Virus record (IMG/VR): IMGVR_UViG_3300032242_002041
Location: 124,001-188,000 of that record
Strand: one strand, 5' to 3'
Length of the DNA: 64,000 bases
The translations under genes and the position numbers were made by a program. Position 1 is the stretch's first letter; every line of letters starts with the position of its first letter. The notes beneath the pieces were generated by a model. That model was not told the origin of the DNA. It did not search any database and worked only from the letters and a program-made list of their open reading frames with translations. Shown here piece after piece: positions 24,324 to 60,401 of this stretch.

Positions 24324-24401
24324 TGGAGCAACGGGTAGGATTTGAACCTACGGTGTTAGGGATTTGCAGTCTCTCGCATTGGGCCACTCTGCCACCGTTG
24401 C
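24324..24401 (-). tRNA. tRNA-Cys(GCA)
   Basis: Cloverleaf, loop CT-GCA-AA, U73-CCA. Confidence 0.95.
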
Positions 24402-24407
24402 ATTGTT

Positions 24408-24482
24408 TGGCTCCCCTCGACAGATTCGAACTGCCACGATCGGTTTTGGAGACCGACATGCTACCGTTAACATCAAAGGGGA
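24408..24482 (-). tRNA. tRNA-Trp(CCA)
   Basis: Cloverleaf, loop CT-CCA-AA. Confidence 0.95.
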
Positions 24483-24487
24483 ATACT

Positions 24488-24561
24488 TGGAGCGGGATAA
24501 GAGAATCGAACTCTTGACCGAAGATTGGAAATCTGCTGTTTTACCATTAAACTAATCCCGC
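24488..24561 (-). tRNA. tRNA-Gly(TCC)
   Basis: Cloverleaf, loop TT-TCC-AA. Confidence 0.95.
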
Positions 24562-24580
24562 TTAGGATTTTACTACAATT

Positions 24581-24656
24581 TGGCTCCGGTCCCTGGAATC
24601 GAACCAGGCTTCATGGATTAACAGTCCACCGCCTACACCGTGTTTGCTTGACCGGA
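24581..24656 (-). tRNA. tRNA-Asn(GTT)
   Basis: Cloverleaf, loop CT-GTT-AA. Confidence 0.95.
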
Positions 24657-24662
24657 TTTGTC

Positions 24663-24864
24663 TAGTGTTAAAATTACTATTCTATGTTTAAGAGACTCTG
24701 GCCTGTGCTGGTTAACCCAGTCATTGCGCGGATCTCTCCTTGTTGCGTCGTTTACACAGCATCAGCAGGCTGTGGTTTCCTGGATTACAGGCTGACTTGA
24801 CAAGGATGGTTATCTTCCTTAACAGTTAGGATTGCTTACTCTTTCGCACACAATCTTAACACTA
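24663..24864 (-). ncRNA. Unassigned ~200-nt structured RNA inside the tRNA array
   Basis: 13-bp terminal stem TAGTGTTAAGATT/AATTTTAACACTA; internal GCCTGT/ACAGGC, CACAGC/GCTGTG, CTGG/CCAG, TCCT/AGGA. Confidence 0.55.
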
Positions 24865-24870
24865 AACAAC

Positions 24871-24946
24871 TGGCGCTCCCAGCGAGATTCGAACTCGCGT
24901 ACTCACCGTGAAAGGGTGATGTCCTAGGCCTCTAGACGATGGGAGC
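24871..24946 (-). tRNA. tRNA-Glu(TTC)
   Basis: Cloverleaf, loop CT-TTC-AC. Confidence 0.95.
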
Positions 24947-31289: not shown

Positions 31290-31645
31290 CTATTTTCTGT
31301 TACGAGGTATAATTACCCTAAGCAGTGATTAAACTGCTAAAGATTGACGTTGTGCTGTACGAGCAGAGAACTTAACGTTCTTACCTGAAACAGTTACTTC
31401 GCCTGTATTTGCGTTTGCATTTACGAGATTTGCTTCTTCGACCGAGCTTCCCCAGTCCTAACGGCTTTAGCTTTGCCGATTCTCCAATAGCCCTTGTGTG
31501 CCAATCGATACCAAATTCATCCCCACCGAAGCATACTGTTTTCACCCTCCGAACTTCACGCTGGGTAACGCATCACAATACACTTCGGTGGAGATGTCGG
31601 GGCTTGAACCCGAGTCTTGCTCACCCTACTTCTATCTTCAACGAA
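31290..31645 (-). ncRNA. ssrA: Circularly permuted (two-piece) tmRNA
   Basis: Acceptor piece GACTCGGGTTCAAGCCCCGACATCTCCA (to 31589) precedes 5' piece GGGGATG (31524); intervening self-complementary stem; tag ORF 31418-31329 ANANTGEVTVSGKNVKFSARTAQRQSLAV; outer ends approximate. Confidence 0.85.
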
Positions 31646-31777
31646 TTTTATTTTGTGGCATACTTTTTTAAGTCGACCACTACTAAACCCTTTATGTTGG
31701 ACAAGAGTTCGACCAACTTTTACTCTAAGACACAGTTTGCCTTCACTACGAAGGAATTACAACAATTCTTTTAAAAC

Positions 31778-39429: not shown

Positions 39430-40665
39430 TTAGAGTCTTGTGTTACCGTAGTGAATCACACGGTAGTTGTCAGTGGATGTTAATTTACGCCACGGATCAA
39501 CAATAATACTTCCTGGTAGTATTGGGCAATATGGTTGTGTATCTAATTGATCACCTGTGTATTCGTAAGTGATTTTACGATTGTGTGCCCATAAAAACAC
39601 TGCTGGGTAATCTACTGTGTCTACTACTTCGTCTTTATTGTCAGCAAGTGGATCAACATACGCAACAGGCAAGCCCGCTTCTTTGACATAGAAACCAACA
39701 AGAGTTGAATAACTACCGATACAGTATTCAACATCTGGCTTGTAGGCCTTGCCATGGATAACAACGGGCAACCCAGACTTCTTGGCTTCTTCAACCAAAA
39801 ACAAGGCCAAGTTTTTTGCTTGAATTTCTCTAGCATGCATAACAGTATCAAACAAGTCATAGCCTACTTGGTATTCTTCAGCTAACCAACGTAGAGCAAT
39901 ATTATCACGTGGATGGCAAGCACCGGCATCACCCATACCAGCTGTCATATACTTAGGACCCATGATACGCATTGTACTCTTAGCCAGCGCATCTGTAACA
40001 ACATCAACGTTGATGTTGCCAATTTTCAAAGCAAAGTCTTGAATCATATTTACTAGACCAACCTTGGCACTGATAAATGTGTTATAGAAAATCTTAATAG
40101 CTTCGCACTCGTCCCATGTGCCAACTTCGTAGCGTGGATTGTTCTGCATAATGGTGTCGTACAATGCTCTAAGTTCGCCTGCAACACCTGTCAAGCTACC
40201 GTCCTCGGTGCCCAACATAATCATCTCTGGATTGACCATGTCCCACTTGACACTGCCCATGGCGATCAAATAAGGATTGTAAACAAATTCGTGTTTGGAA
40301 TCTAACAGGGGAATAAACTTCTTGCGAGTAGTTCCGGGCAATACTGTACTAATTAACACTACTTTTTTAGGAGTTGTAGCATACTGATTTACATTATTGA
40401 TAGCATCAATAACGGCATCATGTCCAAAGTCTCGAGGAGTCATATGACTTGATGGAACTGACCCATCATATCCTTCGGTGTGCGGAGTAGGAACAGCAAT
40501 AAAAATCCACTCGCTTTCGTTAACAAGTTCTTCGATACTGCATACTTTTACACTATCGCTAGTGCGTGGATAGATATCAAAACCGCGTACTTCGTGCTTT
40601 TCAGCAAATACTTCTGCACAATCTAATCCTAATTTTCCAATTCCTATGAAGCCAATCTTAGCCAT
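39430..40665 (-). CDS. ugd: UDP-glucose/GDP-mannose 6-dehydrogenase
   Basis: GIGKLG Rossmann, IAVPTP, STVLPG, YNP, EAIK, GACHPRD, GKAYK. Confidence 0.9.
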   Translation of the reverse strand: MAKIGFIGIGKLGLDCAEVFAEKHEVRGFDIYPRTSDSVKVCSIEELVNESEWIFIAVPTPHTEGYDGSVPSSHMTPRDFGHDAVIDAINNVNQYATTPKKVVLISTVLPGTTRKKFIPLLDSKHEFVYNPYLIAMGSVKWDMVNPEMIMLGTEDGSLTGVAGELRALYDTIMQNNPRYEVGTWDECEAIKIFYNTFISAKVGLVNMIQDFALKIGNINVDVVTDALAKSTMRIMGPKYMTAGMGDAGACHPRDNIALRWLAEEYQVGYDLFDTVMHAREIQAKNLALFLVEEAKKSGLPVVIHGKAYKPDVEYCIGSYSTLVGFYVKEAGLPVAYVDPLADNKDEVVDTVDYPAVFLWAHNRKITYEYTGDQLDTQPYCPILPGSIIVDPWRKLTSTDNYRVIHYGNTRL

Positions 40666-40721
40666 GAGTTTCCTTTAATATTGAATGCTACAGACTAATT
40701 TATCTGGGTTTGGGCAGGGTG

Positions 40722-41471
40722 TCAAGATTTTTTAAACACTGGAATAGGATTCATTTTGTGTAGACTGCGAGCACGTATCTCTTGATATTTTTGTAGGCGT
40801 TCAAGTTCCAAGCTATTTTTTACTAAAATAGTGCCTTCGTCTTGTTGCATGGCAAGTTCCAAATCAACATAAGTCATTCCGCCTAGTTGATCTTCGTCTG
40901 TACGTCCATCATCCCATAAACCGTCTGTAGGAGGAGCATCAATGATGTCTTTGAGTACACCTAGTTCACGACCCATTTGCCATACTTCTGTTTTGTAGCA
41001 ATCAGCAATAGGACTGATATCCACACCGCCATCACCGTATTTGGTATAAAAACCTACACCAAAGTCTTCTACTTTGTTACCTGTACCTACCACAATACCC
41101 GAAACACTTTGAGCAATTTGATAAAGTGTAACCATACGCAAGCGACTGCGACTGTTGGCAAATCCTAACAAGTTGTTGTAGGTGGCCAAGCGGCCTTCAA
41201 ACTCATCAAAGACAGTGGTTAAGTCAATGATCTCGTGACGCACATTGTCAAAGCGTTCAGCAAGCCAGGCACCTTGGCGCATACTAAGATCGTGTAGTTC
41301 TGGACGCTGACGAATAGGCATGGTTACTGCCACAGTATTCAACCCAGTGCGAGCGCAGAGTGCGCTGACTACAGCACTGTCAATGCCGCCACTAATGCCA
41401 ACTACCAATGATTTTATATTGGCTTGTTGAGCATAGTTCTTAATCCAGGCTGTAATTTGATCTTGTAACAT
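40722..41471 (-). CDS. nadE: NH3-dependent NAD+ synthetase
   Basis: GISGGIDS, RSRLRM, GTGN, FYTKYGDG, PTDGL, TDEDQLG. Confidence 0.92.
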   Translation of the reverse strand: MLQDQITAWIKNYAQQANIKSLVVGISGGIDSAVVSALCARTGLNTVAVTMPIRQRPELHDLSMRQGAWLAERFDNVRHEIIDLTTVFDEFEGRLATYNNLLGFANSRSRLRMVTLYQIAQSVSGIVVGTGNKVEDFGVGFYTKYGDGGVDISPIADCYKTEVWQMGRELGVLKDIIDAPPTDGLWDDGRTDEDQLGGMTYVDLELAMQQDEGTILVKNSLELERLQKYQEIRARSLHKMNPIPVFKKS

Positions 41472-41475
41472 TATT

Positions 41476-41739
41476 TTAATATCCTTTTAATTTTAATACC
41501 AACATTTCTTTTGTACTGTACCAACGAGTCCATATCGCACGATCACCAGGACCAGAAATAATATACTGAGCACGATAGGCTAGAGTAAGCCATAACCACC
41601 GACCACTGGCATGGCAACGTCTTGGCCATAGCGACCATTTTAAATCAGTACAGGCCCGTTTTAAAAATCGTTCTTCGCTATAATGATCTGGCATACTGAG
41701 ATCCGGAATTGGCATACTATAACTAAATCCTGGCCACAT
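41476..41739 (-). CDS. Hypothetical protein
   Basis: ORF track. Confidence 0.65.
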   Translation of the reverse strand: MWPGFSYSMPIPDLSMPDHYSEERFLKRACTDLKWSLWPRRCHASGRWLWLTLAYRAQYIISGPGDRAIWTRWYSTKEMLVLKLKGY

Positions 41740-42077
41740 TATGTAATATTATGTTCCCAAAATTGAACCTTCAACCGAGTTTCAGGATCAAGTGTTGCCG
41801 GATCCTTTGCTTGCATTAATTCAACCCATTTCATGTAAGCCTTCCTGCCATCGCCTTGTGCTTTGGCACGCCGCCCACATTCTTCACACACGTGAAATGC
41901 CTGAACTAAAATTTTTCCATCTTTTTTAGGATAGACTTCAAAATCTTCTTTAGTAAATTTATCCACACACCCATTAAATGTGCAAACCACTTCCATGGTC
42001 ACTGGGTCTAAAAAAGCTACATCAACTTTCTTTTTTGACATTTTTTTAATCATTACTTGCCCCAACCATTGCCCCAC
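41739..42077 (-). CDS. Hypothetical protein
   Basis: ORF track; CEEC; exact start uncertain. Confidence 0.6.
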   Translation of the reverse strand: MGQWLGQVMIKKMSKKKVDVAFLDPVTMEVVCTFNGCVDKFTKEDFEVYPKKDGKILVQAFHVCEECGRRAKAQGDGRKAYMKWVELMQAKDPATLDPETRLKVQFWEHNIT

Positions 42078-42919
42078 AAGTCTACATGTAAACGTGGACT
42101 ATAATTAAATCCACGTTCACAGCAAATATTGGCAATGTTTAGTTTATTTGATTCATACGGATCTACAACACCGCCTTGTGGCATTAGATAGACAACACCT
42201 GTAAATCCACCTGCACGAAAAGCATCAACGGCCCGAACAGCTTCATTGACATGATCTTCAGTTTCAACAACAAACTTAAGATATACGTGTCCGTATGTTT
42301 GATATTCGGCAACAATATCAGGACAAATGGCATCTTCCCAACGTTCGCCACTGGCACTTAGTTTAGCACTGACACTAAAGGTAACTTCTTTGTCTTCACA
42401 ACCATAGGTCCAAAAATTGTCAACCAAAAACTTTTTAAAATCTTCAGATAATGCTTGGGTGCCATTGGTTTCAAATGTAAGATTTTTTAAATCTGCCATA
42501 CGAGGATGACTCAACAATTCACCATAAGCACGTTGCCAACCTAGCAACGGCTCTCCACCTGTAATAACCAAGTGTACATCATTGCCGTTGTTCTGTGCCC
42601 ACTGACGATTGGGAGTTAGATCTGTCATATGTGTTACAAGTTCTTCTGTAGTGTAACTAGGCGATAAATGCTTAAATGCAGGATGCCACGACGCATAGCT
42701 GTCACATCCTGTTTCTACCAAGGGCAAGTCCAAAAAGTTATTGTACATATGGACAACTTCGGCTACATCGTCGGCACCTGTGCTCTTCTCACCTGGCTTA
42801 CAACCAAACCCACTACAGGTAAAGTTACAGCCATAAGTGCGTAAGAACACACTAGGCACACCAACAAAGCGTCCTTCGCCTTGTAAACTATAAAATATTT
42901 CGCTTACTTTTATTTTCAT
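42053..42919 (-). CDS. queE: 7-carboxy-7-deazaguanine synthase (radical SAM)
   Basis: SEIFYSLQGEG, FLRTYGCNFTCSGFGC, ITGGEP, ETNG, PRLHVDLW. Confidence 0.9.
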   Translation of the reverse strand: MKIKVSEIFYSLQGEGRFVGVPSVFLRTYGCNFTCSGFGCKPGEKSTGADDVAEVVHMYNNFLDLPLVETGCDSYASWHPAFKHLSPSYTTEELVTHMTDLTPNRQWAQNNGNDVHLVITGGEPLLGWQRAYGELLSHPRMADLKNLTFETNGTQALSEDFKKFLVDNFWTYGCEDKEVTFSVSAKLSASGERWEDAICPDIVAEYQTYGHVYLKFVVETEDHVNEAVRAVDAFRAGGFTGVVYLMPQGGVVDPYESNKLNIANICCERGFNYSPRLHVDLWGNGWGK

Positions 42920-43413
42920 TTCCACCAATCTTCCCAAGGAAAAACAATCCACACGTCTTCTTCAGCCTTATTTAGGTCAACGGCTGAGTAGCTAACATTT
43001 AATTCACTAGTACTCGCTTCATTATCTACTAACACAGCAACACGAACAGTATCGCCCCAGATCTCTTGCCACTTTGGATTGTCCGGTAAACTACTACTCA
43101 TCCAATCTTCTCGGATCCAATTTAGTGTAGCACCCGAGTCGTTAATATCGTCCACAATAAGAATACGCCGTTGTTCAAAGGCATCTTCACTCATCCATAG
43201 GTTCGATTCGGGTTGGCTAGTATCATCACGCAAACTAACCTTAAGACATTCCATTGGACATTCTAAGTACTGACTAATTAGATTAGCTGGCACTAGTCCG
43301 CCACGAGTAAGTCCAACTACATAATCAGGCCGCCATGGATCCAGTGCCATTTGACGTAGGATTTCTTGTGTTTGTGCTTCGACATCTTGCCAGGTATAAT
43401 ATACTTTTTTCAT
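42916..43413 (-). CDS. Purine phosphoribosyltransferase (type I PRTase)
   Basis: GLTRGG, ILIVDDINDSGAT, WIVFPWE. Confidence 0.88.
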   Translation of the reverse strand: MKKVYYTWQDVEAQTQEILRQMALDPWRPDYVVGLTRGGLVPANLISQYLECPMECLKVSLRDDTSQPESNLWMSEDAFEQRRILIVDDINDSGATLNWIREDWMSSSLPDNPKWQEIWGDTVRVAVLVDNEASTSELNVSYSAVDLNKAEEDVWIVFPWEDWWK

Positions 43414-43419
43414 GTTACA

Positions 43420-43448
43420 ATTATACAATACTTGCCAACACTTGTCAA
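43420..43448 (-). promoter_or_regulatory. Sigma70-type promoter
   Basis: TTGACA-17-TATAAT. Confidence 0.9.
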
Positions 43449-43451
43449 GAA

Positions 43452-44165
43452 TTATTCTATATGTAATTGATCGTTTATGTTTTTAATGATTTGTAATTTG
43501 GCATCGGCATTTCGACTACCATGCCAATGAACGATTCTGGATTCCTCAAGACGGCAACCATTCCAATTATCGGTATAGTCCTTGGCATCTTGTGGCCCAG
43601 GCAACCAAGGTCCTTGATAGGCCATGTGTGGCATGCGAGCCTGTTCTATAGTTAGTCCTTGCTCCCACATCATTTTGTTCAGAATAACCTGTTCGGTATT
43701 CCATTCTTCCATGTCCCAATTTTCTGCCATGTTCAAACCAAAATTCCAAATGTCTTGACTCATTTCGGCTGGATAGTATCTAACATCGGCGTTGAAGAAA
43801 TGTGGTATGTCTTGGAACTGTCTTGGATCAGTGTAGTTGAACATACGGAATTCTTTGAAATGGCCAAAGAAATCGACCGGTGCAATGGCCTGCACGTCTA
43901 TGCCACAGTATAAAATATTACAAGGCTCACTGCGCCACAGATCGTAAATTTCAAAAAAGTTTTTACGGAATGTATCTCTAATGTTATCGGTTTCTTCGTT
44001 GTAAAAAACCAATTCCCAATCACCTTGAACAAAGCGTTTTAAACTTTTCAAAGTAATTTCGTGCATCTCCATATATTTGGAGTATATGTCACCTTCGTCA
44101 CTGCGATCCTTAAACCATTCTGGACTTTTAATTTTATGTAAACTGCGAACTAGATAATTTTTCAT
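43452..44165 (-). CDS. Putative GT-A nucleotide-diphospho-sugar transferase
   Basis: ILYCGID, NTEQVILN, IVHWHG; inside sugar operon. Confidence 0.55.
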   Translation of the reverse strand: MKNYLVRSLHKIKSPEWFKDRSDEGDIYSKYMEMHEITLKSLKRFVQGDWELVFYNEETDNIRDTFRKNFFEIYDLWRSEPCNILYCGIDVQAIAPVDFFGHFKEFRMFNYTDPRQFQDIPHFFNADVRYYPAEMSQDIWNFGLNMAENWDMEEWNTEQVILNKMMWEQGLTIEQARMPHMAYQGPWLPGPQDAKDYTDNWNGCRLEESRIVHWHGSRNADAKLQIIKNINDQLHIE

Positions 44166-45109
44166 TGTTGTAACCATTCTGTATGTTGAGAAGACCATTG
44201 AACAAATTGTTCAATGCCTGATGTGCCGGTATATTTAGGTTCAAATCCTGCGGCAAGTATTTTTTTGTTGCTGACGCTATACCTGGCACCGTGCCCTGGG
44301 CGATCTGCCGACTTTACTTCATACCGTAAATCTTGACCAAACAACTGACTGATATATTGAGCGGTGGTCAACAAAGGTTGCTCAGAGTCACCACCCAGGT
44401 TATAAGTATCTACAAATCCGTTCAATGGGCTATACAACAAGAACTGTATGGCTTGGGCACAATCTTCCACATGTAACCAAGCACGTTGATCGGTGTTGCC
44501 GTTGTGGTCTCCGTGTAAAGTTATGGTTTCTTGCTGTAATATAGAACGAACCACCAAACTAAAAAACTTGCCAGGCAATTGTCTGGCACCGTAGATATTT
44601 TGTGCTCGCAATATAGTACAAGGAATTTTATAACTTTGTGCCCAGGCCGATACCAACATTTCGCCTGCGGCTTTGGTGCCACTATAAGGACTACGACAAT
44701 TTAGTGGGTCTTGTTCGGTCCAAGAATCGTTGTTGACGTTTGGGCCATACACTTCTCCGCTGGAAACGTAAATGAATCTTTTTAAATTTTTACTGGTATG
44801 TGCGTATTCCAACATGTTGGCAGTCAAAACTACATTGTCCTCAACTGCCTTGAGTGGATCTTGTAACGTATCTCCTACCTGTGCATTGGCTGCACAATGC
44901 ACAATGTAATCAATTGCTATTGTTGTGGGAAGTTTTTGAACTAGGTCAACTCGGTCAGCAAAATCAGGATGGCTGTCAATGACCCACTGTAATCGTTTGC
45001 TGATGTTTCTAATGACGCATACAATGTGGTAGTCTGTTTCTTTTAAAAAATAATCCAGTGCATGATGCCCCAGGAATCCTGTAGCGCCGGTTAGCAATAG
45101 AGTTGTCAC
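44162..45109 (-). CDS. NAD-dependent epimerase/dehydratase
   Basis: GATGFLG, SSGEVYG, YSGTK; GTG start. Confidence 0.88.
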   Translation of the reverse strand: MTTLLLTGATGFLGHHALDYFLKETDYHIVCVIRNISKRLQWVIDSHPDFADRVDLVQKLPTTIAIDYIVHCAANAQVGDTLQDPLKAVEDNVVLTANMLEYAHTSKNLKRFIYVSSGEVYGPNVNNDSWTEQDPLNCRSPYSGTKAAGEMLVSAWAQSYKIPCTILRAQNIYGARQLPGKFFSLVVRSILQQETITLHGDHNGNTDQRAWLHVEDCAQAIQFLLYSPLNGFVDTYNLGGDSEQPLLTTAQYISQLFGQDLRYEVKSADRPGHGARYSVSNKKILAAGFEPKYTGTSGIEQFVQWSSQHTEWLQQ

Positions 45110-45627
45110 AGTGATTCCTGATCTACAAATTTGGGCCAAGCACGGTCTTTGTCACTGACTACCGCAGGTTCATGAAGCCAAGGCAGGCCAAGATCTGAAT
45201 CGTTCCAGACAATGCCTGTTTCTGCGGTTGGTGCATAGTAGCCATCCAAGTGATACTGTATAACAGTGTCTGGCTCCAAGGTCAATACACCATGATAGCA
45301 ACCGGGTGGAACTATTAACATACTAGGGTCTTGGTCAGTTAAAGTAAAACTAAAAATCTTACCGTAATTTGGACTATTTCGACGACCATCGACAAATATG
45401 TCCTGTATGGTACCTTTGATCACTGAGATAGCTTTACAAGTGCGATTGGGCTGGCGCTGTGCGTGTAGGCCTCTAAGCGTATATGCTTTTTTGGTATAAG
45501 AAGTGTTGGTCTGCAAAAAGTCGTTAGCAAATCCTGCATCGGCAAGACGTTGCTTGTTATAAGTTTCACTAAACCATCCGCGATTGTCATGAAACTTTGT
45601 TAGGTTTACTAGTAGGTGATCTTGCAT
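45106..45627 (-). CDS. rmlC: dTDP-4-dehydrorhamnose 3,5-epimerase
   Basis: FHDNRGWFSE, LRGLH, PPGCYHG, VSDKD. Confidence 0.9.
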   Translation of the reverse strand: MQDHLLVNLTKFHDNRGWFSETYNKQRLADAGFANDFLQTNTSYTKKAYTLRGLHAQRQPNRTCKAISVIKGTIQDIFVDGRRNSPNYGKIFSFTLTDQDPSMLIVPPGCYHGVLTLEPDTVIQYHLDGYYAPTAETGIVWNDSDLGLPWLHEPAVVSDKDRAWPKFVDQESL

Positions 45628-46667
45628 TAGATTTTAAGCCAGCGATCGTTTTTGAGTGTCCAAGTAACCATTTGTTTGATACGGGTGTCAAAATCATACT
45701 TGGGTTCCCAACCTAACCCTTTCATGTATTCGCCACTGAGACTGTAACGAAAATCGTTACCAGGACGCTCTGGATCGTGTCCTACCATGACATATTTTAA
45801 TTCTCGTCCTAGTAAGGTAGCAATTTTCTGGGCCACAACTAAATTACTAATTTCCAATTGACCAACAATGTTAAACTTGGGGCAAGTGGCACCGCCAAAG
45901 TCACTGGCCAGTGGAAAGCCCTTGTGTGGCAAGTCCATAATGAACATGGTGGCATCGGCTACATCTGCGGCATGCACCCAGTGGCGCAGTCCACTTTGAG
46001 TTCCTGTGGCTTCGTCACAGTAGATGACAACAGTTTCATCTGCCAATACCTTACGCACAACCAATGGAATAAACTTTTCTGGACTTTGACGCTCGCCAAA
46101 CACGTTCATGGTGTGCGTACAGTAGATAGGCATGCCAAAGGTGTTTTCGTAGGCAATGCACAATTCTTCACCGCCGGCCTTGGTGGCACTATAAGGACTG
46201 CGACTGTTGTAGCGATCCCACTCTTGGTACTCCACACCTTCGGGGGCATCTCCAAACACTTCGTCTGTACCAAAATATATAAACTTTTCTAATTTGGGCA
46301 AATAATGTCTAGCGTAGTCCAACAGGTTACAGGTTCCTACCACGTTGTCTTGCACAAACATCATAGGGTTTTCGATCGAACGAGTAACGTGGCTACCTGC
46401 GGCCATGTGAATGATAAAATCAACAGGACCAATTTGATGTGCCAACTGTGGGTTAATTTCGGCACGTAAATCATGATAAATGAACTTTAGGCGGCTCATG
46501 GCATCTGTGCCAAACTCTTGACTCAATTCATACAGTCGATTTAGATTGCCTGAAAAGTCCAAACGATCTAGACAGGTAATTTCATATTCTTCGTGTTTGA
46601 GCAAGCGACGAATCATATGGTGCCCAATGAATCCTGCACCACCGGTTACTAATACAGTTTTTTTCAT
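45627..46667 (-). CDS. rmlB: dTDP-glucose 4,6-dehydratase-like
   Basis: GGAGFIG, AAGSHV, TDEVFG, PYSATK, EKFIP, RPGNDFRY. Confidence 0.88.
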   Translation of the reverse strand: MKKTVLVTGGAGFIGHHMIRRLLKHEEYEITCLDRLDFSGNLNRLYELSQEFGTDAMSRLKFIYHDLRAEINPQLAHQIGPVDFIIHMAAGSHVTRSIENPMMFVQDNVVGTCNLLDYARHYLPKLEKFIYFGTDEVFGDAPEGVEYQEWDRYNSRSPYSATKAGGEELCIAYENTFGMPIYCTHTMNVFGERQSPEKFIPLVVRKVLADETVVIYCDEATGTQSGLRHWVHAADVADATMFIMDLPHKGFPLASDFGGATCPKFNIVGQLEISNLVVAQKIATLLGRELKYVMVGHDPERPGNDFRYSLSGEYMKGLGWEPKYDFDTRIKQMVTWTLKNDRWLKI

Positions 46668-47488
46668 CGTTGAGTTCTTATTTCAAATTGTTGCATTTGG
46701 CCATTTACATCGTTTTCTCGTAGCACTTGCCAAGGATCTTGTTTACCAGATTTGACATTGTCCCAGAATGTAGGATTTAATCCTTGACTTTTTAAATACT
46801 CATTGAGTTTGTCGCATTCCTTGAATCGTATCTGTGATGTTGGAGGGTAGTGAAAATCTCTAGGATTGCTAGGATTACCTTCTAATAACTCACGTTCTTT
46901 ATAAGTAGCATCTAAGTTATTACCAGTGAGGTCGGCACGATCGTGCAGGACATCGACTTCAATACGCTGATAAATGTCTACACAATATGCATTTTGACTT
47001 AACCAAGCATCGTTCATACTATGTAAACTCAAATGACCGATTACATCTAGCCAGGCCCTGGGCACAATGGGAAATATACTGTAGGGATGATCGTTGTGAG
47101 TATGAACTGCCAGGAGTTTAAACTGGCCGGTGTACTTGCAAATTTCAGTATCCCAGCCTTGTGTTTCCATTACAGCATCATCGTTCCAGAAAAACATCCA
47201 ATCTGCTGAACTAGCGTGTGCCAAGGTGTTTACATAATCGTGTAATCGACTATACCCCATTGGGTCAAAACTCATGGCAGTATAATGCACTCCCATGTCA
47301 TCCAATTTGGGCTGTAGTTTTTCTTGAAAATGTTCAATACCGACAGTATCATCGGTATCTAGTCCTAACAAAACCTGTATACTATCTAGGTCTGTGGTTA
47401 ATTCTAGCAACCCAACAAGGCTACGATCCAATGCCGCTGTGCGGCCTCGTGTGGGTAATAATATGGCTATTTTGTATTCGTTTGTCAT
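46664..47488 (-). CDS. GT2-family glycosyltransferase
   Basis: ILLPTRGR, FFWNDD; TATAAATA at 47497-47504. Confidence 0.8.
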   Translation of the reverse strand: MTNEYKIAILLPTRGRTAALDRSLVGLLELTTDLDSIQVLLGLDTDDTVGIEHFQEKLQPKLDDMGVHYTAMSFDPMGYSRLHDYVNTLAHASSADWMFFWNDDAVMETQGWDTEICKYTGQFKLLAVHTHNDHPYSIFPIVPRAWLDVIGHLSLHSMNDAWLSQNAYCVDIYQRIEVDVLHDRADLTGNNLDATYKERELLEGNPSNPRDFHYPPTSQIRFKECDKLNEYLKSQGLNPTFWDNVKSGKQDPWQVLRENDVNGQMQQFEIRTQR

Positions 47489-47534: not shown

Positions 47535-48050
47535 TTAGTCTTCGTAAGTAGCTGAATTAGCACCATGTTCAAACACTTCTACAGATTTAATCCTAACTGT
47601 TGGATTGATCGGATAACGCATGTCGCCACTAGCCAACAGTTCAGCCATTTTGTTATAGGCCAGTTTGGCAAACATTTCACAGCCTACTCCGGGCACAATG
47701 CGCAGATCACACAAGGCACCGCGTTCATACGGCAACTTGCTTAGATGATTTTTGCTGTCAACATTTACAATTTCGTTCATGTGTTTGAAAAAATCTAACA
47801 TTGGATCGTCTTCGGCCACGACCAAAGTATGATCAAACATATAGTCTGCCCATGCTTTGAATTCTTTCAAACCACCAAAGTCCATACACCAGTTTTTGTC
47901 ATCTAGTGTATCACATTCAAAGATTAATTTGATACCAATTGAGTATCCGTGAAGTGTTGAGCAGTGACTATGAGTCGCTCTCCACTGTCTAAAACAGCAT
48001 GAAAGTCCGCGATCGTTGCCGTAAGTTTTTGTTGAATAGTACTTTGCCAT
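47535..48050 (-). CDS. queD: 6-carboxy-5,6,7,8-tetrahydropterin synthase
   Basis: CSTLHGY, MDFGGLKEFK, FDHT, FEHGANSA. Confidence 0.88.
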   Translation of the reverse strand: MAKYYSTKTYGNDRGLSCCFRQWRATHSHCSTLHGYSIGIKLIFECDTLDDKNWCMDFGGLKEFKAWADYMFDHTLVVAEDDPMLDFFKHMNEIVNVDSKNHLSKLPYERGALCDLRIVPGVGCEMFAKLAYNKMAELLASGDMRYPINPTVRIKSVEVFEHGANSATYED

Positions 48051-48054
48051 TTGT

Positions 48055-48133
48055 TTCTCCTATGTTAGATTATAGCATAGGCGGCAGAGTTTGTAAAGCG
48101 GGAGTGACGCCAAGACCGCTGTGAATCTATTTA
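48055..48133 (-). promoter_or_regulatory. queD leader: preQ1-I-like pseudoknot, anti-SD hairpin and overlapping promoters
   Basis: TAAATA 48128-48133; P1 AGCGG/CCGCT; TTTACA-17-TATAAT (48069-48097); CCTATG/CATAGG hairpin covers the SD. Confidence 0.55.
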
Positions 48134-48654: not shown

Positions 48655-51306
48655 TTAATCTATCCAAAATCTAAGTTCGTGCATTAGTCGATATTGATTC
48701 TGCTGGGTTCCCATAACACTGAAACGATACATGGTCTTTTTATCAATCATGTTAGTGTATAATGCTCTAACATACGCTGTAGTTTGATTCTGTATTGCTA
48801 GTTTTTTGTTAGTGTACACTATATTGCCGCTGTTGTCAACACCAGTCGGCATCTTTGCCTCCACATTGCCTGATAATACCACAGGCTTGACACCAGCATA
48901 TACTCCAAGATCACCAAACTGATCTTCGGTATAACGATATCCGGTTTCAGCCCAAGCACCGACTATGTTATTAACCTTGGTTATTAATCCTGGAGTAATG
49001 TTGGTTGTAACGTGCATCAAGCTGGCCTGTGTGCTAAAGCCACCATCTCGGTAAGTGGCCACATTGTCTAGGATGCCTGAATTGGTAACAGTGCCCCAAG
49101 CACCACCAAACGCCATCCAGGGATTGGTGTTTAGGTTGGTAAACTGAGCACCATAGGTAAACTTACCGTTTTTATAAATTTCTGGAATACCTACAGAGTA
49201 TTGTGTGGGCTTTTGTAGCATTCCAGGTCCTTGATCGTTACCAAAAAATGCATTACGATTTTCTGTAGCAACACGCATATTGCCATAGGTTACTGGTGTG
49301 CCATTAACCAGATATTCTGCGTGGCTAGTTAAATTGTATTGATCAGTGTGTTCAGTGTTATAACCAAAACTATTCATGCCTGACACATTCATAAATTTAA
49401 GGTTGGTTGTAAACCCACGACCTACACTGTCAGTGACCAATGTATCGCTATCATCAAGCCCTAGACCCATTACGTATCCACGTATTGGTGCAAATCCTTT
49501 GCCACCACTTAGTGGTATTGACATATCGCCCACGGGCTGAAATACTTTAGTCGTGTCTAGTAAATTAAAACCAAAATAGTTAGTTGAGCTGGCTGCCAGC
49601 ACGGTGTTGACTTGTGCATTACTCATCCACGGCCATACCTGTTTAATCGCCGTAACAGTTGCCTGAGTAGTGGTACTGGCCGTGTCTCCTAATTTGCTGA
49701 GATAGATAGCTTTTTGTTGTGTACCATTGCCGCTATAACTGATTGCTGTAGCAAGATACATGCTATTATCTGGCCCTTTAACAAACACAATACCATTGGC
49801 ACCGCCGGCTGCACTGGCATTAATTGCCTTTTCAAGAGCCACCGATTGTCCTACAAAAGCATCAATGATGGCGGCATAGCTGGCCACATATTTGTTTTCT
49901 TTAGTGTGTATTAATACTTGTGCGCCGGTAGTACTTCCCCAACCAGTTGCGGCTAATACGATGTCAGTTAACCCGTCGCCGTTAACGTCTACAAGTTTAG
50001 GATTATAGTTTGCAGAAGTTTTAGTATCATACCCAACCAGGGTAGTATCAGTAACATCTATAAATGTGCCACCACCTTTGTTTTTTAAGAATTGTATCTC
50101 ACTGAAGTCAGGCCATGCTCCATTAGTAAACCAAGGTCTACTAAAAATAACAGCACTAGTTAATCCAGAGTTGTCAAAGTCAAACGCTAACGCTCTATAA
50201 TCGGTCGCTCCGCTAAAACCGTAACTATCCCATTTAGGTAAAAAGAATCTTGAGCCTGGCAAAGTACTGATCTTGGTTATTTCAAAGTCTAGTGTGCCGC
50301 GATTGGTGTCGGTCATAGCCCAGCTATATAAATTTGTGCTACAAGTTTTGCAACTAGTTACTCCAGAGTCTGTTAGAATAACCGTACTAGTGCCGTTGCC
50401 CATAAAATCAGCAATAGCTACTGAAGCAGCAGATCCACCATAATCCAGCCCCGACACAGTATGAGCAACAAAATTATTAGTACGCGAACCAAATACAACC
50501 TTACTACCTGTTGTAAAGATATCGTCAATGCCATCACCGTTGATGTCGTAGACTGCACTGTCATGACCATTAATACCGAGTCCTAAATCAACTCTAGTAA
50601 AACTTGAACCGTTATTAAGAAATAACCAACCAGATCCAATATTAGCACCATTATCTGTATTTGGTGAAACGTACATACTTTTTCTTCCACTACCATTAAA
50701 GTCACCAAACTTTACACTAGGTTCTGTACCTAAAATTACATTATCCGTTCCTGTGAACCATTTACTAGTTTTGTTTACTAACTGACCGTTTTCCCAATCA
50801 AAAATGTTCAAATTATATGTAGGATAACTACCGCCATTGGTTGTACCAGAGCGACCTGCTGTAACAAGTTGTTGACCCGTTCCGGCAAGATTTTCAGCGT
50901 ATAATGCACTTGAATCGTATTCGTACACTGCACTATTAATCGGAGTAACTGATCCAACACGAACCGGCGTGGCATATGGAACATAGGTATTTGTGGGTGT
51001 AGTGGTTGTGGGTGTAGTAGTGGGTGTAGTGGTTGTGGGTGTAGTGGTTGTAGTGGGTGCGGTAGTGGGTGTAGTGGTTGTAGTGGTTGTGGGTGTAGTA
51101 GTGGGTGTAGTGGTTGTGGGTGTAGTAGTGGGTGTAGTAGTAGGTGTGGTGGTTGTGGGTGTAGTAGTGGGTGTAGTAGTAGGTGTGGTAGGACCTGTAC
51201 CTTGGGTAGGGGGCGCAGATGTACCTGGATTGTTTGCGCCTCCACCGCCGCCAGCACAAGCTACTAATTGTAGTACTACTGTTGCTAAAAGCAAAATCCG
51301 TTTCAT
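48655..51306 (-). CDS. Large lipoprotein: Thr/Pro linker + FG-GAP/VCBS repeats + probable C-terminal beta-barrel
   Basis: Lipobox LVAC; GDFNGSG, DINGDGIDD, DVNGDGLTD repeats; beta-rich C-terminus. Confidence 0.75.
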   Translation of the reverse strand: MKRILLLATVVLQLVACAGGGGGANNPGTSAPPTQGTGPTTPTTTPTTTPTTTTPTTTPTTTPTTTTPTTTPTTTTTTTPTTAPTTTTTPTTTTPTTTPTTTTPTNTYVPYATPVRVGSVTPINSAVYEYDSSALYAENLAGTGQQLVTAGRSGTTNGGSYPTYNLNIFDWENGQLVNKTSKWFTGTDNVILGTEPSVKFGDFNGSGRKSMYVSPNTDNGANIGSGWLFLNNGSSFTRVDLGLGINGHDSAVYDINGDGIDDIFTTGSKVVFGSRTNNFVAHTVSGLDYGGSAASVAIADFMGNGTSTVILTDSGVTSCKTCSTNLYSWAMTDTNRGTLDFEITKISTLPGSRFFLPKWDSYGFSGATDYRALAFDFDNSGLTSAVIFSRPWFTNGAWPDFSEIQFLKNKGGGTFIDVTDTTLVGYDTKTSANYNPKLVDVNGDGLTDIVLAATGWGSTTGAQVLIHTKENKYVASYAAIIDAFVGQSVALEKAINASAAGGANGIVFVKGPDNSMYLATAISYSGNGTQQKAIYLSKLGDTASTTTQATVTAIKQVWPWMSNAQVNTVLAASSTNYFGFNLLDTTKVFQPVGDMSIPLSGGKGFAPIRGYVMGLGLDDSDTLVTDSVGRGFTTNLKFMNVSGMNSFGYNTEHTDQYNLTSHAEYLVNGTPVTYGNMRVATENRNAFFGNDQGPGMLQKPTQYSVGIPEIYKNGKFTYGAQFTNLNTNPWMAFGGAWGTVTNSGILDNVATYRDGGFSTQASLMHVTTNITPGLITKVNNIVGAWAETGYRYTEDQFGDLGVYAGVKPVVLSGNVEAKMPTGVDNSGNIVYTNKKLAIQNQTTAYVRALYTNMIDKKTMYRFSVMGTQQNQYRLMHELRFWID
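50995..51195 (-). repeat. Coding tandem repeat (PTTT/PTTTT)n
   Basis: Imperfect 12-15 nt units such as CCCACAACCACTACA and CCCACTACTACA. Confidence 0.9.
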
Positions 51307-51337
51307 TGTATAACCTAGATTAATTAACAATACTAGT

Positions 51338-51396: not shown

Positions 51397-52203
51397 TTAT
51401 CTAGGCGCAAAGTCCTGTTGTAGTTTAATATTATCCATAAATTCTTTTTTAGTTCCAGGATCTGTATTAAACGCACCTTTAAGTACTGTAGTCTGTGTTA
51501 GACTACTGTGCGCCATAATGCCTCGGTTTTCGCAACAACCGTGTGTAGCTTGAATATAAACTCCAACATTCTCACTGTCGGTTGCCCGCATTATTTCTCT
51601 CGCGATGTCATTGCATAGCTCTTCTTGCAAAGTACCACGCCTAGCGCACCACTGAGCTATCCTAGTATATTTGCTAAGACCAATGAGTTTATTTGCGGCA
51701 ATAATACCAATATAAGCAACACCACTGACAGGTTGATGGTGATGACTACACATGCTACGGAGCTCACTACGAACCACAAGCATACCTTCGTAACGATCCG
51801 CTGAGTCATTTGGAAAAGCTGTTGCATCTGGTGCTGGATCATATCGACCTCCCATAATTTCGTTATAATACATTTTAGCTAGACGTCTAGCGGTACCTTT
51901 ACTGTTAGGATCATTTTCACGATCAATTAATAGTGTGTCCAGTACCTGTTCAAATGCCACCGTGGCTTCATTGATTAGTTGTTCTTTATCACCTTCATGT
52001 AAATAATCACTGATATTATCGCCTGCCCAGAAACGCTTCTTATCACGTTTCATCTTAAAGCGGATAGCATCGGCTAAATTTGCTTCTTTATAGCCCTTAT
52101 CGTCCATGCCAACATCTTCATAGCCTGGGTGATACGGTGCTTCTTCTACTAATTTAGAATTAGCCAATGCGTTTTTTAAGTCTTCTGATGTAAATGTTGT
52201 CAA
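51397..52203 (-). CDS. folE: GTP cyclohydrolase I
   Basis: DPNSKGTARR, SMCSHH, GLSK, LQEEL, HGCCENRG; TTG start. Confidence 0.95.
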   Translation of the reverse strand: MTTFTSEDLKNALANSKLVEEAPYHPGYEDVGMDDKGYKEANLADAIRFKMKRDKKRFWAGDNISDYLHEGDKEQLINEATVAFEQVLDTLLIDRENDPNSKGTARRLAKMYYNEIMGGRYDPAPDATAFPNDSADRYEGMLVVRSELRSMCSHHHQPVSGVAYIGIIAANKLIGLSKYTRIAQWCARRGTLQEELCNDIAREIMRATDSENVGVYIQATHGCCENRGIMAHSSLTQTTVLKGAFNTDPGTKKEFMDNIKLQQDFAPR

Positions 52204-52283: not shown

Positions 52284-52877
52284 TTAATCAATTATTTTAA
52301 TTTTTCGGCAATCTGGATATGCTATGAATTTAGGCGCTTCGTTAACCAGTGGCAGTAATTGACTTCCTAATTCTGCTTCTTCCGTTGTGGGTTTATAGTG
52401 ATAACCTACGTGGAACACTTCTTGTGCTTGCCAGGGCACAATCCTCAGGTCACGACCATCATAGCGTTGAGCCAACATTACCTTGTAGGCCACAGGATCA
52501 TCTAGCAAGATAGCACCACAGCGACCAATCTCTAATGGCTTGGTGCGCCCAAAACTTACACAAGTTAATGTGCCAGGACGATACATGTTGCGCTCTAATC
52601 TGCGAGCACTATCCCAAATCCTAGTAAATTCAAATTTATATTCACCAATCCATTCTTGTCTGTTTGGGTGTTCGTGATAACTGTACTTGATACCCAGCTT
52701 GTGCATGGTCATAGGCACACTCAAATATGTAAAAGGAGTAAAACAAGTTTCTTTTACACGGTCGTATCTCATACATAATTCAATAGCATGAGTACAACAG
52801 TCAGTCATTACAGTATAAGGAGCACCTGTGTACTCGGCTAACTCTTGTTCAAATTTTAGTATACTGTCAAAGCTCAT
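52284..52877 (-). CDS. Short DegT/DnrJ-like PLP-dependent sugar aminotransferase
   Basis: CCTHAIEL, WDSA, SFGRTKPL, GAI. Confidence 0.75.
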   Translation of the reverse strand: MSFDSILKFEQELAEYTGAPYTVMTDCCTHAIELCMRYDRVKETCFTPFTYLSVPMTMHKLGIKYSYHEHPNRQEWIGEYKFEFTRIWDSARRLERNMYRPGTLTCVSFGRTKPLEIGRCGAILLDDPVAYKVMLAQRYDGRDLRIVPWQAQEVFHVGYHYKPTTEEAELGSQLLPLVNEAPKFIAYPDCRKIKIID

Positions 52878-53824
52878 TGATTATACCACTTCCATACATG
52901 GTTAATTATATCTGTCATAACAAATTTTGGTTGCCAGCCACTGACCTTTGTAAACTTGCCAGCATCAGCTGTTAGAATAGCTGGGTCACCTTCGCGCTTT
53001 GGTCCATGTAACATGGGAATATTAACGCCGGTAATCTGTGCAGACGCACGAACAATTTCAAGATTACTATATCCAGTGTTAGTACCGAGATTATAGATGT
53101 CGCTAGGAATAGTTCGATCCATTGCCAAGATATGTGCCTCGGCCAAGTCTTCCACGTGAATATAATCACGAATACAAGTGCCATCTGGTGTAGGATAATT
53201 AGTTCCATACAAAGTAAAATCTTGTTTGTTTTTAACTGATTCTAATACTCGAGCAATAATATGTGTTGCACCTGCGGCTTGTCCATGCCGGGCTAGGCTA
53301 TCTGCACCACACGCATTAAAATAACGAAAACTCACATAGTCTAAACCATAAGCACGATGATAACTGGCCAACATCCAATCAATCATCAACTTGCTTTCGC
53401 CATACGGGCTGATCGGTTCTTTGGGATCAATTTCCTGCACAGGAGTTATGACGGGATTGCCGTAGGTTGCAGCACTGCTACTAAAAATAAATCTAACTTG
53501 TTTATCGTGATTCCTAATCAAATAGTCTAGTAGGATTTTAGTTTTGATAAAATTGTTGTTGTAGTACTCTTGAGGATCTTGCATACTAGGACCAACTAAG
53601 CTGGTACCAGCACAATGAATAACAGCGTCTGGACAAAATCGCTTGATAGCATCCAGCCCTAGCTCAGCTGCAAAGTCTCCAGTATGCCACTGGCACGGAA
53701 CAGGAATCAAGTTACCAGGAGGCATTACCCGATCAATCGCTAATACATCGTGCCCGTCATCCACTAATTTTAATAATGTTTCCCCGCCAATGAATCCAGC
53801 AGCACCAGTGACTACTACTTTCAT
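52874..53824 (-). CDS. galE: UDP-glucose 4-epimerase
   Basis: GAAGFIG, SSSAATYG, PYGESK, RYFNACG, DGTCIRDYIHVEDLA. Confidence 0.9.
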   Translation of the reverse strand: MKVVVTGAAGFIGGETLLKLVDDGHDVLAIDRVMPPGNLIPVPCQWHTGDFAAELGLDAIKRFCPDAVIHCAGTSLVGPSMQDPQEYYNNNFIKTKILLDYLIRNHDKQVRFIFSSSAATYGNPVITPVQEIDPKEPISPYGESKLMIDWMLASYHRAYGLDYVSFRYFNACGADSLARHGQAAGATHIIARVLESVKNKQDFTLYGTNYPTPDGTCIRDYIHVEDLAEAHILAMDRTIPSDIYNLGTNTGYSNLEIVRASAQITGVNIPMLHGPKREGDPAILTADAGKFTKVSGWQPKFVMTDIINHVWKWYNQ

Positions 53825-55256: not shown

Positions 55257-55718
55257 TTAAATTACAGTTGATTGTGTTGGACGAGTAAGATTATAACTAA
55301 TGGAGCATCCGTTCTCGCCGTCTTCGGATACTTCAATTACTACAGCACGACCGGGATAGCGTTCGGCTATCTTTAAATATAAATCATCGGCAATCATTTC
55401 ACATGATTTCCAGTCTAGTTCTAAAACGGGATTCGAAACAATTCCGTTATTGGAATAGAGATTTTCAAGCCACCGTTTGAATTGGATGAATTCGATATCT
55501 CTGTCGTTATGGAAGACATCGATTGACACCCGGAAATGAAAGATATGGCGATGAGGACTGGCCAAAAACGATACATCATATTCTCCTGCTGTGCATAATG
55601 CTGGGTCTGTTGCAGCCGCTGGATAGCGATGAATGCCTTCCTTACGGAATGTAACCCAAATTTGTCTCTGGGCTGCCGCTTTAATGCGTTCAATAGTTTC
55701 GCGTTCTTGTTGTATCAT
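55257..55718 (-). CDS. T-fold QueD paralog, DpdL-like (candidate CDG decarboxylase)
   Basis: LASPHRHIF fits the LxxxHRHxF signature recalled for DpdL; SCEMIA, SEDGENG. Confidence 0.6.
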   Translation of the reverse strand: MIQQERETIERIKAAAQRQIWVTFRKEGIHRYPAAATDPALCTAGEYDVSFLASPHRHIFHFRVSIDVFHNDRDIEFIQFKRWLENLYSNNGIVSNPVLELDWKSCEMIADDLYLKIAERYPGRAVVIEVSEDGENGCSISYNLTRPTQSTVI

Positions 55719-56890
55719 TTCTGGTGGCTTTCTATATTAGTATTATTAAACGAGTCAATGGCATCATACATATCTGGAAAAATTGCACGACTATTTAATT
55801 TTCTATCTTGGTCTAATTTGTTAAATTCTTCTACTGTATATTCAAGTCCGTCCCAATTGGATTTATAGGGAGTTCGATCGTCGTTTAACGAGGCAATTAC
55901 GTTGTCAATGCCAAGAATATTTGAATAATCATTTTTAGAAATTCGCTGTCTAACCAACTCTCTCTGGTGATCAGTTAGTCGTTGAATTGCCCACGGACCA
56001 CCATTATCTCTCAGATTGTAGATATTAATAGTTATTGCTCGATGAGATATATTCAAAGTTTGATGCACCAAATCAATAAAATCCCAAATTGACAACGAGT
56101 TAATATTCATAAACACCATGTTAAAACTAAGGTGATGCTTTGCAATCAAGTTAATTGTGTGTAAATTTTCTAAGAAAACATTCCATTTTCCGGGCCAACG
56201 AATATATTCATATTGTTCTGCAATTGATTCTCCGCTAACTAACCATTGTACATTACTAAACTGTTTCAACAATTCAAAAATTTTATTTTCGTGTATTAGG
56301 CTAAGATTAGTATTAACACAAATACGACAAGATTTATTAACTTCTAATAATTTTCTTAAGACTATTTCGTTTTCTTTTATCATCAACGGCTCGCCACCAG
56401 CAAGATATATTTCTTTAAGGTCGGCAGCAGATTCTAAAACATAATCTAACAAATCTCCTTTGGCTTCTTTCATCTTAACTACTTGATATTTCTGTTCGGC
56501 CCATAGTGAGCTGAGCTCAGGGTCACAATATATGCAGGCAAAATTGCAGGTATTGTTCCAACGCAAATCAAGATATTTTAAATTAAAGTTATCAATATTG
56601 TTGTAAAACTCATCACCAAGATGGTTATATTTCTTTTTAAAATGATGTTGTAAAGTATGAGTACCAATCTGAGAGTGGCAATTTTTACACCCTTCAACCG
56701 GAATATCATTTAACATCATTGTTTTGATATCGAGATTATTAGAGCCGCTTATTGTGTCTTTGATTGCAGGAGTTTTATTAATATTACCTAATTTATTTTT
56801 ACTCACACAACAATTTTCTATATTGCCTTGGGGGTCAATATACAGTGAAACCCACGGCGCTGGACAGAAATGTTTATTATCTATGGTCAT
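55715..56890 (-). CDS. Twitch-domain radical SAM protein
   Basis: N-terminal CPAPW...CC; CNFACIYC; AGGEPL. Confidence 0.85.
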   Translation of the reverse strand: MTIDNKHFCPAPWVSLYIDPQGNIENCCVSKNKLGNINKTPAIKDTISGSNNLDIKTMMLNDIPVEGCKNCHSQIGTHTLQHHFKKKYNHLGDEFYNNIDNFNLKYLDLRWNNTCNFACIYCDPELSSLWAEQKYQVVKMKEAKGDLLDYVLESAADLKEIYLAGGEPLMIKENEIVLRKLLEVNKSCRICVNTNLSLIHENKIFELLKQFSNVQWLVSGESIAEQYEYIRWPGKWNVFLENLHTINLIAKHHLSFNMVFMNINSLSIWDFIDLVHQTLNISHRAITINIYNLRDNGGPWAIQRLTDHQRELVRQRISKNDYSNILGIDNVIASLNDDRTPYKSNWDGLEYTVEEFNKLDQDRKLNSRAIFPDMYDAIDSFNNTNIESHQK

Positions 56891-60372: not shown

Positions 60373-60401
60373 ATTGTACGTGGTTTATTTAGATTCTGCA
60401 A
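60373..60401 (-). promoter_or_regulatory. Sigma70-type promoter with nested TAAATA
   Basis: TTGCAG-17-TACAAT. Confidence 0.65.

Follow-up and report, generated by a model that had tools for sequence, protein, structure and literature searches.

A 45-base RNA pseudoknot in front of a QueD-like (7-deazaguanine/pterin pathway) gene was conserved, with compensatory mutations, in well over a hundred freshwater phage contigs. It appeared to be an undescribed, apparently phage-restricted riboswitch candidate that resembles the preQ1-I riboswitch in topology, although membership of that family was not supported. The element was located in a 64,000-nt stretch of phage DNA (hereafter the window; positions 124,001 to 188,000 of the IMG/VR record IMGVR_UViG_3300032242_002041), within a 228-kb phage record. 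The initial annotation had proposed here a preQ1-I-like pseudoknot upstream of phage queD, coupled to a hairpin occluding the Shine-Dalgarno sequence (SD) and to a bypass promoter. All the sequence features it had listed were present, and the observation was confirmed. Its interpretation, a phage riboswitch variant sensing a deazaguanine intermediate, whose pseudoknot competes with the anti-SD stem, was supported only in part.

Architecture and conservation of the pseudoknot

The genes in this part of the window, and all features of the element, were encoded on the minus strand:

48128-48133 (-): TAAATA motif, 7 nt upstream of P1, overlapping the TAG stop of an upstream 53-aa ORF; possibly a phage late-type promoter
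48116-48120 (-): P1 5' strand, AGCGG, pairing with 48097-48101
48112-48115 (-): L1, UCUU, whose second base (C 48114) was invariant in relatives and whose length varied from about 4 to 9 nt
48108-48111 (-): P2 5' strand, GGCG, inside the P1 loop, complementary to 48080-48083
48102-48107 (-): L2, UCACUC (usually UCAUC in relatives), ending in the invariant C 48102 directly 5' of the P1 3' strand
48097-48101 (-): P1 3' strand, CCGCU
48084-48096 (-): L3, UUACAAACUCUGC, with invariant A at every second position followed by an invariant UC.GC block (consensus YUCUGC)
48080-48083 (-): P2 3' strand, CGCC, shared with the predicted alternative fold occluding the SD and start codon
48059-48081 (-): predicted SD-occluding hairpin, CCUAUG (48081-48076), an 11-nt loop and CAUAGG (48064-48059), covering AGG of the SD AGGAG (48061-48057)
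48045-48086 (-): predicted outer helix, UGCCG (48086-48082) with UGGCA (48049-48045), closing over the SD hairpin and covering part of the start codon
48069-48097 (-): internal sigma-70-like promoter, TTTACA (48097-48092), a 17-nt spacer and TG-n-TATAAT (48074-48069), with a predicted start near 48061-48063, inside the 3' arm of the hairpin
47535-48050 (-): QueD-like PTPS-family protein of 171 aa, the gene inferred to be regulated, with its ATG at 48050

The P1 strands enclosed a 14-nt loop, UCUUGGCGUCACUC, ending in C at 48102, and the 3' tail consisted of UUACAAACUC followed by UGC (48096-48084). In a single sequence none of this was exceptional, as the fold had z = -1.3 and promoter-like sites were no commoner in the region than in shuffled sequences. 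A reading of P1 as an intrinsic terminator was rejected, since it has 5 bp, a 14-nt loop and no U-tract, and a terminator scan did not call it.

Comparative evidence, by contrast, showed that the element is real and far more than chance. A scan of viral contigs for relatives of the QueD-like protein identified 457 loci, and among the best 80 of these, 76 displayed the same element upstream, one more displayed it with a single P1 mismatch, and three lacked it. P1 sequences differed in a compensatory way (AGCGG/CCGCU, AGAGG/CCUCU, UGCGG/CCGCA, AUCGG/CCGAU, ACCGG/CCGGU, AGUCG/CGACU and AGUGG/CCACU), as did those of P2 (GGCAU/AUGYC, GACGC/GUGUC, GGCG/CGYC, GGCA/UGCC and GGGC/GUCC, with the 7-bp versions AUGGCAU/AUGUCAU and AUGACGC/GUGUCAU). 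In the 46 distinct leaders of this set, collected only by homology of the downstream protein and without P2 playing any part in their choice, P1 was 100% paired and P2 was 86.5% paired, and 9 of the 10 pairs (4 of 5 in P1, all 5 in P2) showed changes on both sides. Sliding the partner strand gave 36-53% pairing and lowered the covariation score from 0.555 to 0.05-0.13. A covariation model built from these leaders (R1) and a pattern scan of the conserved core added more loci, and the same held on 101 aligned hits (99.8% for P1, 82.4% for P2), although 63 of these 101 had been pre-selected by a pattern covering L2 and L3 and by P1 complementarity. Because the sequences are related, significance derived from shuffling is inflated, and the slid-partner controls are the safer comparison. 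Frequent G-U pairs placed the structure on the sense RNA. The alignment of the 101 hits was model-based, a MAFFT alignment of all 109 leaders having been discarded because it mis-slid the P1 5' strand. A free-register best-helix test for P2 separated cognate from swapped tails only weakly (4.65 against 4.35 bp), because most sequences share a GGC/GYC core, and fixed-register counts were therefore preferred.

The unpaired core was invariant in the set gathered by protein homology, although the downstream proteins were only 27-50% identical to that of the window. Invariant alignment columns comprised G5, C7, the C closing L2 (column 25, C in all 46 of these sequences and in 100 of 100 distinct sequences), the first C of the P1 3' strand, A33, A35, A37, T39, C40, G42 and C43.

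Distribution and gene context

The element was linked one-to-one with QueD-like genes. R1 scored 48.8 bits at the site, the next hit in the 228-kb genome scoring 12 bits, and no copy was found ahead of FolE or of the QueE-like gene. Five related phage genomes of 265-382 kb (four of them 91-100% complete, one 72%) each harbored exactly one motif, immediately ahead of the only QueD-like gene. Of 120 pattern hits, 82 had a 5-bp P1, of which 81 were real motifs and one (locus L204) looked like a chance match. Most of the pattern-found leaders sat directly ahead of a QueD-like gene, while in three an extra gene lay between, the QueD-like gene being the second of the operon, and in two no start codon was called. 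A degenerate second copy (20.5 bits, P1 no longer fully paired) was found on contig L103 (8-54, plus strand), 1 kb upstream of the intact one and ahead of a 309-aa methyltransferase-like gene, and may be a decaying duplicate.

The window protein matched PF01242 (7e-15) and phrog_2389 (2e-35), but scored only 33.7 bits against a cut-off of 89 with the QueD equivalog. It is non-canonical, HGY replacing HGH and the first zinc-binding His being replaced. The proteins fell into six subfamilies, of which just one keeps all the canonical zinc-binding residues (HGH and the first zinc His) and one other keeps only the first His. Among relatives of the canonical subfamily only 10 of 80 carried the element, which is therefore a lineage-restricted leader and not a universal feature of phage queD.

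In GTDB species genomes, a pattern scan gave 23 hits, of which 18 were chance and 5 were true elements. These five lay on short MAG contigs of 4-8 kb (L224, L229, L235, L237 and L239), binned into Bacteroidota and Nitrospira MAGs, that carried the QueD-like gene and are probably mis-binned phage fragments, and none on a long cellular contig. The sigma-70 promoters and strong SD sites argue against a Bacteroidota host. A blastn search of annotated phage records with the locus found no match, and searches of the literature, within the searchable library, found no description of the motif. Among assembled contigs of relatives in public RNA runs, one freshwater metatranscriptome contig was 100% identical over exactly 48043-48121 (79 bases, aptamer plus platform) with unrelated flanks on both sides, which indicates that the leader is shared, or exchanged as a module, between different phages, but says nothing about 5' ends.

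Genes of the GTP to 7-deazaguanine pathway were encoded nearby. FolE lay 3.4 kb upstream (51397-52203, minus strand), and a QueE-like radical-SAM enzyme at 42053-42952 (phrog_2076; 54% identical to the QueE-like gene that follows the QueD-like gene in locus L207), together with a phosphoribosyltransferase (42916-43428) and a NadE-type NAD synthetase (40722-41471), all on the minus strand. The phage route described so far is FolE-QueD-QueE-QueC plus DpdA (PMC6884629) and is thus incomplete here. No TGT/DpdA was detectable, even in complete relatives, the QueC hit examined in the window was the NadE-type PP-loop protein, and only weak, partial QueC hits appeared in the relatives. This suggests a 7-deazapurine (or pterin) made at the base or nucleotide level rather than inserted by transglycosylation; such a product is plausible, but preQ1 is not an obvious one.

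A dense set of nucleotide-sugar genes surrounded the QueD-like gene (39430-47488 and 52284-53824, minus strand), including RmlB- and RmlC-like genes, two further epimerase/dehydratases, a UDP-glucose dehydrogenase-like gene and a DegT fragment. The pathway genes also sat next to a glycosyltransferase-like gene (N-terminal ILLPTRGR motif), which was a conserved neighbour of QueD-like genes in other loci. An 891-aa protein with FG-GAP repeats (48655-51330, minus strand) lay between FolE and the HIT-family gene, with a strong TTGACC-17-TATAAT site just upstream (51366-51338). The 228-kb record also contained sixteen Radical_SAM (PF04055) matches, 11 of them above the family cut-off and some with SPASM domains (for example at window 55715-56890), an unusually large number for a phage. 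The window further encoded a permuted tmRNA (31386-31646, minus strand; RF04321, 70.5 bits) and ten tRNA genes on the minus strand between 11546 and 35004, several clustered at 24327-24946.

Expression platforms and promoters

The same aptamer was joined to three different platforms, in which the P2 3' strand was predicted to pair also with the SD or start codon region. Type I, as in the window, has the CCUAUG/CAUAGG hairpin over the SD, which was the consensus structure of the 36 type I leaders, and the outer UGCCG/UGGCA helix over the start codon rests on the MFE fold only. Type II has GYCAUUG paired with CAAUGGC across the AUG. Type III has GUCAUC paired with GAUGRC, the whole P2 3' strand being included in some leaders (AAGUCAUC paired with GAUGACUU). 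In MFE folds the P2 3' strand paired with the ribosome-binding site (RBS) region in 36 of 36 type I, 16 of 16 type II and 31 of 40 type III leaders. Forbidding those bases from pairing, which mimics a formed pseudoknot, cost 4-6 kcal/mol and lowered paired SD bases from 3.25 to 1.39 of 4 in type I and paired AUG bases from 3.0 to 1.44 of 3 in type II, while in type III the modelled effect was small (AUG 2.75 to 2.17, SD unchanged). The simplest reading is a translational ON switch. However, this polarity is inferred from nearest-neighbour folding without pseudoknot energies, and the occluding helices are invariant within each type, so that covariation neither supports nor contradicts them.

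Promoter-like sites differed between platforms. The internal TTTACA-17-TATAAT site scored 11 of 12, with an upstream extended -10 TG. A site scoring at least 9 of 12 at the same place, with the -35 in L3 and the -10 in the hairpin loop, occurred in 34 of 36 type I leaders and in 0 of 56 type II/III leaders. Many type II leaders had TTGACx-16/17-TATAAT ending about 7 nt before P1, so that the aptamer would begin the mRNA, whereas such a promoter was found in 1 of 36 type I leaders. TAAATA lay within 30 nt upstream of P1 in 29 of 36 type I leaders. On the coding strand of the window, 17 of 27 TAAATA sites, often as CTAAATA, lay within 110 nt upstream of an ORF start (e.g., at 60391, 57243, 44237, 42974, 35817, 31196 and 22400), which fits a late-type promoter such as those of T4-like phages. 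The bypass promoter proposed in the initial annotation was thus supported by conservation but not by transcript mapping, as the assembled contigs from public RNA runs gave no readable 5' ends.

Relation to known pseudoknots and possible function

The Rfam preQ1-I model (RF00522) scored 9.3 bits at the site (E = 6.9) against a gathering cut-off of 39, the weakest of seven chance-level hits in the 228-kb genome, and none of its sub-threshold hits fell on the motif in five related genomes. Rfam searches at gathering and permissive thresholds on the window, the local region and 11 related loci gave only chance hits at the element (freshwater-2, Mu-gpT-DE, PsrR1 and snoU49, each matching just the SD or an AU-rich stretch), with no PreQ1 hit in the window or the local region. 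The element shares with preQ1-I, as described in PMC10622847, a minimal H-type pseudoknot with a 5-bp P1 topped by a G-C pair, a short P2 between the P1 loop and the 3' tail, an invariant C closing L2 next to P1 (whose role in ligand pairing would be by analogy), and adenines in L3, in addition to its pathway context. It departs from the preQ1-I description in its L1, long and variable, where the conserved ligand-contacting U after P1 is replaced by a variable base (column 6: T36, A32, C32 of 100), the invariant base being C one position later. In its 13-nt L3 a run of 4-5 adenines directly before P2 is replaced by adenines at alternate positions and an extra invariant YUCUGC. The P2 3' strand is not the SD but lies 20-40 nt upstream of it, and the modelled polarity is ON, whereas preQ1-I sequesters the SD or forms a terminator in an OFF switch.

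Other H-type pseudoknot riboswitches (SAM-II/SAM-V, guanidine-III, fluoride) are of a similar size class, with covarying helices, highly conserved loops that presumably line the pocket, and control of translation. Their gene association differs, and no sequence or model similarity was found, no Rfam family reaching its threshold on the window or on 10 related loci. THF-II (folE motif) and THF-I riboswitches regulate genes of the GTP-cyclohydrolase/pterin branch and recognise a guanine-like (pterin) face, but are cellular and form hairpin or three-way-junction folds, and FolE itself was not preceded by the present motif. The T4 gene 32 mRNA pseudoknot and ribosomal-protein leader pseudoknots are likewise 5'-leader pseudoknots tied to one gene. 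They repress translation on protein binding and tolerate sequence change in their loops, while here the loops are invariant and knot formation should open the RBS.

The favoured explanation, held with some confidence, is that the element is the ligand-sensing domain of a previously undescribed riboswitch-type leader. In this view, a compact H-type pseudoknot (P1 of 5 bp, P2 of 4-7 bp) would form a binding pocket from its almost invariant unpaired nucleotides (C in L1, UCAUC in L2, A.A.A.YUCUGC in L3). When the knot is stabilised, presumably by a ligand, the P2 3' strand would be withdrawn from its downstream partner and the RBS would open, turning ON translation of the QueD-like enzyme. In type I leaders, the internal promoter would give a short transcript lacking the aptamer and the 5' arm, which would escape control, whereas longer transcripts from upstream genes or from the TAAATA motif would carry the switch. 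The analysis itself established the two helices, the conserved core, the link with QueD-like genes, the modular platforms and the conserved promoter-like hexamers, while ligand binding, its effect on expression, ON polarity and promoter use are inferences. The ligand is probably a guanine-faced compound of the GTP to 7-deazapurine/pterin pathway, a deazaguanine intermediate being only one candidate. About as likely as not, the element is a new riboswitch class, found so far only in phage sequences (large freshwater phages of about 265-380 kb and related contigs), for which 7,8-dihydroneopterin triphosphate, GTP or guanine, CDG or another 7-deazapurine may be ligands. In one lineage it would be combined with an internal promoter, the same DNA encoding both a regulated and an unregulated mRNA.

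The association with a single gene family, in one copy per genome and with no other pathway gene carrying the motif, fits autoregulation by the encoded protein as well as it fits a metabolite sensor, and ON logic is unusual for a biosynthetic gene. A translational operator bound by the QueD-like protein or by another phage regulator, as with the T4 gene 32 and ribosomal-protein leaders, is thus the leading alternative, as conserved unpaired nucleotides can serve protein recognition just as well. It was nonetheless considered unlikely, because the RNA core is invariant while the proteins have diverged and differ in metal-site residues, because freeing the RBS upon knot formation would mean positive autoregulation, and because the element is very small and closed, like small-molecule pseudoknot aptamers.

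A divergent but genuine preQ1-I riboswitch binding preQ1 or preQ0 was judged less likely still, given the sequence and model differences above and the absence of an encoded QueC or QueF-type step to preQ0/preQ1. A ligand-independent structure (for example a 5'-end stabiliser, RNA thermometer or folding chaperone for the leader), whose knot and occluding fold equilibrate without any effector, would agree with two alternative folds that are short and of similar predicted stability, and with no ligand being known, but would not need near-invariance of about 15 unpaired positions across 100 distinct sequences, and appeared very unlikely. Least likely was the possibility, set beforehand as a refuting condition, that conservation reflects only promoter hexamers and an SD hairpin. 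L3 and the hairpin loop do double as -35 and -10 hexamers in type I leaders, but types II and III keep the whole aptamer without an internal promoter, downstream of the promoter and in the transcript, and the compensatory changes and G-U pairs in P1 and P2 cannot be explained by promoter function.

Known riboswitch classes are cellular, and phages usually just carry copies of them. A class found only on phage contigs, with about a hundred distinct representatives, would be a new orphan aptamer of the smallest size class, whose clear covariation makes it directly usable for ligand screening and structural work. The ON logic and the promoter embedded in the aptamer, both inferred, are unusual regulatory designs, and the preQ1-I-like topology with a different conserved core offers a natural test of how far that fold can be re-tuned. 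The element could also reveal how large phages time or gate a 7-deazapurine/pterin pathway, which here lacks the usual QueC and DpdA steps, hinting at nucleotide-level synthesis of a modified base.
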